Source of the DNA: Mytilus trossulus
Lineage: Eukaryota
Length of the DNA stretch: 64,000 bases
Direction of reading: 5' to 3'
Assembly (NCBI RefSeq): GCF_036588685.1
Contig: NC_086386.1
Span: forward strand, 25,730,001-25,794,000
Shown here: positions 54,466-63,094 of the stretch, piece by piece
How the letters are laid out: each line of letters starts with the position of its first letter
Position numbering within the stretch: position 1 is the first letter of the stretch
Program-made: the position numbers and the translations under genes
The notes under the pieces: model-generated
Told to the model about the DNA's origin: nothing
Databases searched by the model: none
Seen by the model: only the letters and a program-made list of their open reading frames with translations

Positions 54466-57400
54466 GTATGTTTTTTAATCTATATACTGATATATATTTT
54501 TAGATTTATACTTGAGGCATCAAGGCGATTTTGAGCCTGTCATGTTGTAGAGACACATGTTTTTGTCCTAACAATCTCCTGTGTCTGTTTTTATCGATGT
54601 ATTGTTGTTACATAGACGTATACCTTCATCTTGATTTTATTTACATTCATTACATTCTGAATATAATACCGCAAATACGCTGAAATCACAGCTTTGGTAC
54701 TTTCGACCCATGAATTTGTAAACAGAAACTGTTACTATTATAGTACATACAATGTATTATACTCGAAGATTTTGTACTTTCAACCCATGAATGTGTTTTA
54801 GACAAACAGAAGTACAAAATGTATGAACAATGATCATGAAATTCGACATTTATATTAGACTAATTTTATTTTTTTTATGTTTAACGCTACTTTCAGCACT
54901 ATATATACACTATATAAAAAATTCGTGGCTGCAATATTTTATTCGTATGAAAACAGGCAATCCTTGGCAATTTTAAAACAATTGATTATAACACACCTGA
55001 AAAAGGGTTCCAACTCCCAACCTCGGTGTTGACATGCTTGATATACAGTAGTAACCCTAAAATAAACTAAAGCTTGTAGATCAACAGTTTAAGTGTAGTA
55101 CACATAAATCATATTCGTAGCATGAACCAATTAAACTTAATTCAGTTACCAAAAAAGTTTAATTTTAGGCCAGCTTTGTCACAAAAAGCTATTGCTCAGG
55201 TGAAATGACATATATTTGAAACAAACATATCCTTTTAATTTGTATCAGTGGTCAGTTTTCACACATGTACAAAAGTTTATTAAGATGTTTAACATAAAAT
55301 AATCATTAACTTTACATTACAGCCTATACAATGTAAGGCGGCTGTTTGTTGGGAAGTTGGAAAACCCCTCTCCATAGAGACTGTCGAGGTGGCACCACCA
55401 AAGAAAGGGGAAGTTCTAGTAAAGGTATAATAACTTTTTGGAGTATATTGTATTACTTTTAAAGAAATGACAAGATACAGGTATCGACAAATTGTAGGTA
55501 CATAAAATGTGCATATGTGTATATCATAATAATAATATTTAGTTTGTTTTTAACTAACTGATAACAAAATCAATATTAATACCAATTAGAAACAATAGTC
55601 AATGATCTAAAGACAGTGTTGATTGGTAACCGCTTAGTATAAGTTTATTTAATGGCTTGATACCAGGATTGTTTCTACTTTTCCGGGCACGGTTAACAAC
55701 ATTTCCGTAAAAATAGGGATGTGCTATCACATTTCAAAAAAGTTTTCTACAGATACAACCAAACTTCAAAACAAAATCTTTATATCTATGGAAGAATTTA
55801 GTAAAGGTTTTAAGTAATTTGTGGTAACGAGATTACAGGCTAAATAATTTACCAGTAAAACATAGATTTCGTTCGTTAAAATCAAAAACGTCACAACAGA
55901 CACGGGCATAGCGAACGAGTTGTTGATTATAAACATCGGTAGATGATGCCAAAAGAACATCACCATCCGAAAAGGGAAAATTATCAATAGGGAACTAAAA
56001 GTCGTTCCTTCAGTCGTAAATTTTACAACTATCAAAAAATATGAAAAATGGATGTTTTTGATTGCCAATGGAACGATTAGCAATCTTATGACCTTATGAT
56101 CATTGCTGTAAACACAGTATCAATGTTTATGCATGTATCGAGGTAAGATCACGATACATTAATACATTTACAGGTGTTATACACAGGAGTCTGTCATAGT
56201 GATCTTAGTCTCCTAAATGGATCGCTAAAGATCGGTCAGATGCCTGTCATCCTCGGACATGAGGGTGCTGGTGTGGTAGAAAGCGTGGGGCCAGGTGTTA
56301 CTGATTGTAAAGATGGTGAGAAAAACTTTTATTTTAAATAAACAAATGTGGTACGAGCATGATTAGTTCGAAAGACTGATAGCCAAGTATTTTTCCCTCA
56401 GAGAAGATTTGTTAATATAATTAATTACATCAGTTGTTTCTTTTCTCGATTAAAATGGTATATTATTGCTATAAAAATGTCGTTTTATTTGCATGTGTTA
56501 TGGTTTAATCATTGCTAAATTGAAGTAAACGCGCGTTTATTTTTATATCTACTAACATTTTGACTCATTGCAGAATAAACGATTACATGAGGTTAACGCC
56601 GCATTTACTTTTTGCGTGCATATACATGTAAATGTTATGCTTCGTCTTTTTCCAGCTGGAAATTTAAAAAAGAAGATGTGGTATGAATGCCAATGAGACA
56701 ACTATCCACAAGAAAAAAAATGTCACGGAAATTAACAGTAATAGGTTACCGTACGGCCTTCGACAATAAGTATATCACATGCCGCATTGTCAGCTATAAA
56801 AGACTCCGAAATAACAAAATTATTGGGACAAAATGCAACTGAGCAAACTTTACGTATAAAGAATGAACGAAAAACAAATAGGAACAACATTCAAAAACGA
56901 CACCACTAATTTACAGGCTCCTGACTTCAGACAGGCACACACATATAGAATATGGAGGGAATCAAAATGCTAGGGAGATAGTGTTGTAACAGTACAACAT
57001 AAGAACGAACTATTAGAATAATTTGAAAAATCTTAACTCATCAGTTGGATGCAAATAGAAATACATCGATCTAACCAAAACACAGAGTGGACCTGGCCGG
57101 TTACTTGTATATGCTAAGAACTAAAAGATACTAAGTTCTTATCTGAGAGTTACTGACAGCTAGTTGAAATCCACTAACAGCTTACAAACGAAAAGCATGC
57201 AACTAAGATATAAGGTTGTTGCACAGTGCATGGCGTACAGATGTATCGTGGTATATGTATATTGACGAGTGAATAGCATGGGGGATGCGTCAAAGGGACA
57301 ACAACCCAGTCGAAGAGCCCAAATCATTCAATGGGTACTGGACGAGAACTTCAGCTAGCCATACACAATAATGTATACTAGTTCATCGAACTGGACGCCA

Positions 57401-63094: not shown

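Follow-up and report, generated by a model that had tools for sequence, protein, structure and literature searches.

Introduction

Alcohol dehydrogenases (ADHs) are a classic case of the origin of new enzymes from a conserved detoxifying ancestor, and the closest described relatives of the gene considered here are the class III enzyme (ADH3, or S-nitrosoglutathione reductase, GSNOR) and two types of ADH that came from it. In human GSNOR (own numbering), S-(hydroxymethyl)glutathione (HMGSH) is contacted by Thr46, Asp55, Glu57, and Arg114, and Gln111, Arg114, and Lys283 make up an anion pocket that directs the orientation of HMGSH and S-nitrosoglutathione (GSNO) via the charge of Arg114 (PMC6409631). 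The horse liver ADH E chain (class I) arose from class III by duplication, has a hydrophobic, uncharged pocket, and has lost Arg115 (horse numbering, used from here on unless stated); plant class P ADH (4rqt, 8con) is the textbook independent ethanol-type ADH from class III. For invertebrates, ADH3 has been stated to be the sole form (PMC5913725), and amphioxus has a single ADH3 (PMC3184775). Here we analyze an ADH gene of the mussel Mytilus trossulus, referred to as paralogue A, that lies in a 64,000-nucleotide stretch of the genome assembly (the window; G000:C14:25730001-25794000).

The product of this gene is XP_063414004.1 (P0336), a protein of 380 aa named "alcohol dehydrogenase class-3-like"; the gene is already annotated, and what is new is the reading and not the locus. 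We consider it likely that A is an intact, expressed duplicate of class III ADH that has lost the GSNOR site and turned into a glutathione-independent NAD(H) oxidoreductase, an activity that we infer from its residues. Our literature searches found no description of Mytilus ADH3-derived paralogues.

Descent from Class III ADH and Loss of the Glutathione Site

The closest solved relative of A is human ADH5/GSNOR (493 bits, 57% identity); plant GSNOR scores ~448 bits and horse class I ADH ~420 bits. An AlphaFold2 model, for which 54 homologues were used, has high confidence (pLDDT 93.8, pTM 0.92) and matches GSNOR and horse ADH structures with TM scores of 0.96-0.98, the closest being 3qj5 at a root-mean-square deviation of 0.9 A. 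Class III descent, as claimed in the initial annotation, is borne out by human ADH5 being the best match, by 3qj5 being the nearest fold, and by eight introns in common with the canonical mussel ADH3 described below. A shares 58-63% identity with canonical ADH3 from any phylum; among the canonical enzymes, identity is 75-83%. The NCBIfam model TIGR02818, an equivalog for S-(hydroxymethyl)glutathione dehydrogenase/class III ADH with a whole-protein cut-off of 543.95 bits, gives A only 498.4 bits, below the cut-off; oyster ADH3 (624.4 bits) and a bacterial FrmA found in the same assembly (contig C247; 620.3 bits) are above it.

The catalytic machinery is that of the ancestor. Alignment to human ADH5 and eight canonical animal ADH3 sequences reveals that A and all its orthologues keep the catalytic zinc ligands Cys46, His67, and Cys174 with Glu68, and the structural Cys97, 100, 103, and 111; A also keeps Thr178, Asp223, Lys228, Arg369, and the Rossmann GxGxxG motif as GLGAIG. 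PF08240 and PF00107 are recorded for the cluster of A. By its zinc ligands, its GxGxxG motif with Asp223, Lys228, and Arg369, and its fold, A is a zinc-containing medium-chain dehydrogenase/reductase (MDR) alcohol dehydrogenase, and the earlier statement that the zinc ligands and the NAD-specifying Asp are intact was correct.

The glutathione site is another matter. Exon 3 (56174..56315) is the segment where Thr48, Asp57, and Glu59 are lost: horse positions 46-60 read C46 H47 S48 D49 L50 S51 L52 L53 N54 G55 S56 L57 K58 I59 G60, and the exon also carries His67-Glu68. Exon 4 (58139..58229) holds Trp93, the structural-zinc Cys97/100/103/111, and a CDEYLG loop with one extra residue and without Arg115; the 112-116 loop runs C111-D-E-Y-L-G-G, so that Q112-K-I-R115 becomes D-E-Y-L-G with no basic residue at the place of Arg115. 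Exon 5 (59047..59179) encodes Phe140, Leu141, and Asn142 together with a variable surface loop (codons 136-139), exon 6 (60091..60177) the catalytic Cys174 and Thr178, exon 7 (61421..61550) the GLGAIG dinucleotide fold with Ile203, Asp223, and Lys228, and exon 9 (62959..63094) Lys284, Ile294, Phe306, Thr309, Ser317, Phe318, and Tyr319. Relative to canonical ADH3 the changes are T48S, A50L, Y51S, D57L, P58K, E59I, Y93W, M141L, G142N, V294I, A318F, and F319Y. Every substitution listed in the initial annotation (T48S, Y51S, D57L, E59I, Y93W, CDEYL, FLN, A318F) is present both in the mapped exons and in P0336; of its motif GSFYGG, GSFYG stands, and the final G was read through into the intron, since the spliced protein has GSFYGD and G321 has become Asp.

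At the four HMGSH-contact sites (48, 57, 59, 115), which are invariant T, D, E, and R in the eight canonical ADH3 sequences, A has Ser, Leu, Ile, and Gly, and the anion pocket (human Gln111, Arg114, Lys283) is Asp, Gly, and Lys, with Lys alone kept. The loss of the GSNOR signature proposed earlier is supported both by the score below the TIGR02818 cut-off and by replacement of all four contact residues. The changes also concentrate around the substrate. At the 13 substrate-pocket positions tabulated in PMC4028059, A departs from the canonical ADH3 consensus at 10, compared with 130/364 positions elsewhere (Fisher p=0.0036), which exceeds chance; among columns invariant in canonical ADH3, 8/11 pocket columns are changed versus 49/199 others (p=0.0016).

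Predicted Activity and Resemblance to Other ADHs

These residues point to a dimer-type, zinc- and NAD-dependent medium-chain ADH whose gene probably arose in the mussel lineage when class III ADH (ADH3/GSNOR) was duplicated in the genome. Its catalytic machinery (zinc ligands, the Ser48/His47 proton path, the NAD selector Asp223, and Arg369) is unchanged, the glutathione clamp of Thr48, Asp57, Glu59, and Arg115, plus the anion-pocket Gln112, has been replaced by uncharged or acidic residues, and hydrophobic residues of larger size fill the wide class III cleft (Tyr93Trp, Ala318Phe, Val294Ile, Met141Leu). Such an enzyme should no longer act on glutathione adducts or omega-carboxy substrates, and would oxidize or reduce small to medium uncharged alcohols and aldehydes with NAD(H), independently of glutathione. 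Its history would parallel that of the class I ADHs of vertebrates and the class P ADHs of plants, which also arose from class III.

Comparison with each of these systems sharpens the picture. With class III ADH/GSNOR (human ADH5, 1m6h, 3qj5), A has in common the zinc sites, His47, Asp223, Lys284, and Arg369; A differs in lacking Thr48, Asp57, Glu59, Arg115, and Gln112, in the one-residue extension of loop 112-120, in the change of G321 to Asp, and in Trp93 and Phe318, which would narrow the cleft. The pocket is hydrophobic and uncharged; it is probably narrower than that of class III, and possibly narrower than that of class I too. Against the horse class I enzyme, to which A is ~50% identical, A has the bulkier residues Trp93, Phe318, and Ile294 in place of Phe93, Ile318, and Val294, and its loop at position 59 is as long as in class III; its origin is probably separate. 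The small pocket of yeast ADH1 also has Trp at position 93, and structures of the horse F93W mutant are in the PDB (1axe, 1a71). Plant class P ADH scores ~423 bits against A, similar to class I, but belongs to another kingdom, has another set of pocket residues, and has no close relationship to A.

The initial annotation had described a "class-I-like pocket", which holds in part. S48, L57, F140, and L141 agree with horse ADH (horse S48, H51, L57, and F93 were taken from the titles of PDB mutant entries, and F140 and L141 from PMC4028059); W93, I294, and F318 are just bulkier and hydrophobic, and Arg47 and His51 are absent. Of the typical class I residues Arg47, His51, Phe93, and Phe140 (PMC4028059), A matches at Phe140 only, having His47, Ser51, and Trp93 at the other positions.

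Gene Structure, Expression, and Constraint

The gene lies on the + strand and has 11 coding exons, all introns being GT..AG. Exons were located by three-frame translation and by tblastn with the intronless bacterial FrmA from the same assembly; searches were run per exon, and full-length work used the database protein P0336, which is matched at 100% by all exons in the window and the next 2 kb. The window, which is AT-rich (~31% GC), has exons 1-9, from 54445 to beyond its end. Exon 1 (54445..54465) begins with ATG and encodes MADTKLK, identical to residues 1-7 of P0336, with the donor GT at 54466 (GTATG); exon 2 (55323..55424; PIQCKAAV...EVLVK) is in phase 0 at both ends and was placed by tblastn and splice sites; exon 8 (62726..62856) reads KIFGMTEG...GNVKCM. 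The last base of exon 9 is the first base of the Asp321 codon, and exons 10 and 11 are past the window end, at window-equivalent 64522-64660 (L007:522-660) and 65684-65714 (L007:1684-1714). The interval of 56174-63094 first given for the gene does hold exons 3-9, but the whole gene is larger, starting at 54445 and continuing with exons 10-11 beyond the window.

Spliced transcripts covering exons 4-9 were found in 4 runs, each from a different study (2 organisms in all), as one contig of 816-1366 nt per run. In all 4 runs the junctions are exactly as predicted (58229 to 59047, 60177 to 61421, 61550 to 62726, and 62856 to 62959). The transcript contigs depart from the window at 13 exonic positions; 8 of these differences are synonymous and 5 are non-synonymous, and 4/5 of the non-synonymous ones fall within the surface loop of codons 136-139. 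There is no stop or frameshift across the 11 exons of A, and five Mytilus species show no variation at S48, W93, F140, L141, L57, G115, and F318 or at any catalytic residue.

A from M. trossulus (P0336) is 91.6% identical to A from M. edulis, about the same distance as to M. californianus, and M. edulis and M. galloprovincialis A are 98.4% identical to one another (P0336 compared with P0343, P0338, P0339, and P0161). The distance of the M. trossulus protein suggests a fast lineage, hidden paralogy, or old allelic lineages. In M. galloprovincialis there are three adjacent models (VDI15223-5), an observation that bears on hidden paralogy.

Paralogues and the Canonical Copy

The assembly searched (1.30 Gb, 541 contigs) holds more than one class III-like gene. 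Whole-genome searches with three exons each gave the same loci: A on C14 at 25.78 Mb, three further divergent paralogues on C14, namely B (8.15 Mb; P0162), E (3.45 Mb; P0194), and C (31.03 Mb; P0370, shortened), a canonical ADH3, D, on C7 at 21.97 Mb (L022, G000:C7:21,963,455-21,971,474, - strand), which was analyzed per exon, and a sixth locus on the small contig C247, an intronless bacterial-type frmA. D is canonical at the sites that set A apart, with CHTDAYTLDGHDPEG, YTPQC, CQKIR, FMG, and TAFGG, and it is transcribed, its spliced transcript being seen as the loose ends that flank 62809-62843 in three runs and read IHTM/RAALEA. A canonical copy had been expected elsewhere, perhaps adjacent; it is indeed present and transcribed, on chromosome C7 and not adjacent, and with D and the further paralogues in the genome A is not the sole class III-like gene.

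A and D have eight intron positions and phases in common, which suggests duplication at the DNA level. The intron before the GxGxxG exon, between ...NTA(K/Q) and V(K/E)PGS, is in A, B, C, and E and is absent from D; the other mapped intron positions and phases are common to canonical D and to A, B, C, and E. Like A, the other three paralogues fall below the TIGR02818 cut-off (B 512.3 bits, E 452.0 bits, C 464.8 bits). Changes are enriched in the pockets of B, C, and E as they are in A, through other residues, so that the pocket is particular to each paralogue, and with four differing pockets the substrate range probably differs among paralogues. The initial annotation missed that three other divergent paralogues accompany A and that the pocket differs in each of the four. 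We envisage a mytilid family of four lineages (A, B, C, and E, all on C14) beside a housekeeping canonical ADH3 (D) on C7. On a more tentative footing, and somewhat against the odds in our estimation, mytilids may have independently repeated the "enzymogenesis" of vertebrates (classes I, II, and IV) and plants (class P) by making four ADH classes of their own from ADH3, with A, given its yeast-like Trp93 plus Phe318, as a narrow-pocket form for substrates of ethanol/acetaldehyde size.

Several features of the other loci were recorded along the way. In paralogue E (L019/L023, G000:C14 about 3,450,750-3,451,070), there are three tandem copies of the 5' part of exon 7 (VEPGSVCAVWGL...), one of them with Cys for the second Gly of GLG; the annotated protein uses the last copy only. 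In paralogue C (L014:306-953, G000:C14 about 31.035 Mb), exon 9 is open into a low-complexity FFFPQNFF-type repeat, and the locus holds a stop-free open frame of 216 codons; its protein P0370 has 341 aa with an aberrant C-terminal part, versus 377 aa in four congeners, and M. trossulus paralogue C may be damaged or mis-assembled. Contig C247 (L006, L024:1-10000) is 22.6 kb long, with 40-53% GC versus ~31% for the genome and dense same-strand open reading frames; its frmA is intronless and of bacterial type, with 369 aa and 620 bits to TIGR02818, and the contig most probably entered the mussel assembly from a bacterial contaminant or symbiont.

Phylogeny and Alternative Explanations

A careful maximum-likelihood tree (48 rows, LG+C20+F+G4) unites all 12 mytilid sequences of A, B, C, and E in one clade with support 100/100 and a stem of 0.38. 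Within it, E and C are deep, and a "B-like" group (Logan, ENA) branches before the A/B split. The best tree places this clade with the pteriomorph ADH3 of scallop and oyster (71/96), as expected from duplication inside Pteriomorphia. An approximately unbiased (AU) test does not reject a forced clade with the vertebrate non-class-III ADHs (p=0.50), a grouping that the careful tree does not make; because of this value, independence of the mytilid clade from the vertebrate classes is favored but not proven, and the earlier claim of an independently evolved enzyme has the best tree on its side while the AU test leaves the joint clade standing. Two family searches, covering at most 8000 candidates and 120 rows, returned no named non-Mytilus species above canonical ADH3 among the matches listed; more distant members may exist elsewhere. 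A phmmer library search with exon 3 alone returned mostly short fragments and bacterial ADHs with a look-alike CHSDLSxxNGT, and was uninformative for orthology.

Separate ADH3-like duplicates occur in mosquitoes (Aedes/Armigeres; P0215, P0220, P0243) and in Ostrea edulis (P0275, which has Arg for His47), nested in their own taxa. Like A, they are changed at some of the sites 48, 51, 59, 115, and 318 and are annotated as "class-3-like"; unlike A, they keep Asp57 and the loop length, are much less remodeled, and are not orthologous to the mytilid clade. Among invertebrates, ADH3 duplicates appear to have lost the glutathione site repeatedly.

Several observations weigh against the reading of A as a glutathione-independent oxidoreductase. 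Orthologues of A among Mytilus species are 89.5-93% identical, versus 95-96% for B, C, and E, and M. trossulus A has 14 private changes, D142N among them; fast evolution with this many private changes could mean relaxed constraint. The predicted loss of activity on HMGSH and GSNO is read from residues alone, where Thr48Ser is a conservative change and the anion pocket still has its Lys284. Only 4/13 pocket positions of A (S48, L57, F140, L141) equal those of horse ADH. As for the tree, canonical Mytilus D was left out of it, and it does not resolve the attachment point of the mytilid clade. One could suppose that A is a decaying duplicate under relaxed constraint, transcribed and enzymatically irrelevant, with pocket changes that are drift: it is the fastest in the family, its terminal branch is 0.081 versus 0.023-0.035 in orthologues, and its sister paralogue C is apparently damaged in the M. 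trossulus genome. We find this improbable given 11 exons free of stops and frameshifts with splice sites that are all canonical, spliced transcripts in 4 studies, an excess of synonymous over non-synonymous differences outside one loop, zinc, NAD, proton-relay, and inner-pocket residues that are invariant in five species, changes that concentrate in the pocket and are not spread evenly, and a model that is confidently folded. It is about as hard to credit that A still works as an S-(hydroxymethyl)glutathione dehydrogenase/GSNOR, subfunctionalized and holding the glutathione moiety by other residues. Its best sequence and structure matches are GSNOR, it keeps His47, Lys284, Arg369, and the entire catalytic centre, and its orthologues are labeled ADH5/FrmA in databases; set against this are the replacement of 4/4 HMGSH-contact residues, with Arg115 changed to Gly and an acidic residue at position 112, a score under an equivalog cut-off that the oyster and bacterial enzymes exceed by 75-80 bits, and the presence of an unmodified, expressed canonical copy.

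The mytilid clade might also have survived from an ancient non-class-III lineage that it shares with the class I-type enzymes of vertebrates and that most other animals have lost. Such a history would agree with the AU test, with quick trees that join P0090 to the mytilid clade (SH-aLRT 80-97), and with the S48, hydrophobic 57, deletion at 59, loss of R115, L/F318, and Y319 common to both groups. We judge it to be a long shot, since the joins rest on long branches and on exactly those sites where loss of glutathione binding should lead to convergence, these sites also change independently in the mosquito and Ostrea paralogues, the careful tree prefers oyster and scallop ADH3, no named non-Mytilus species stood above canonical ADH3 among the matches listed, and a single ADH3 is described in amphioxus (PMC3184775) and other invertebrates (PMC5913725). 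Readings of A as a pseudogene, as a contaminant, or as the sole ADH3 were rejected; the bacterial-type copy is on the separate contig C247. A glutathione-independent oxidoreductase derived from class III thus remains the explanation that we prefer.

Annotation and Implications

The names given to orthologues of A carry the ancestral function: ADH5/FrmA in M. edulis (CAG2251158.1), frmA in M. coruscus, S-(hydroxymethyl)glutathione dehydrogenase/alcohol dehydrogenase in M. galloprovincialis, and class-3 chain L-like or H-like; XP_063414004.1 itself falls in the 90% cluster of the M. coruscus orthologue. The suspicion raised in the initial annotation that the enzyme is mis-annotated as ADH5 is thereby supported, and mussel transcriptomic, proteomic, and ecotoxicological studies that read these labels as formaldehyde or GSNO metabolism probably misassign function. 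An expressed, mussel-specific family of four ADH3 descendants would add an independent and replicated case of enzyme origin. All four paralogues have lost the same glutathione-binding sites and have remade the pocket in different ways, which would make them natural replicates for the substitutions needed to leave glutathione dependence; if true, a four-class mytilid system contradicts the long-held view of ADH3 as the only invertebrate MDR-ADH.

Finally, introns 7 and 9 of A contain repeat copies, at 62401-62800 and 63201-63600, for which k-mer depths in the RNA contigs reach thousands in all four runs. Many rearranged joints are seen in the RNA contigs at these repeats, and the copy at 62401-62800 overlaps the subject of a separate note on a twister motif.

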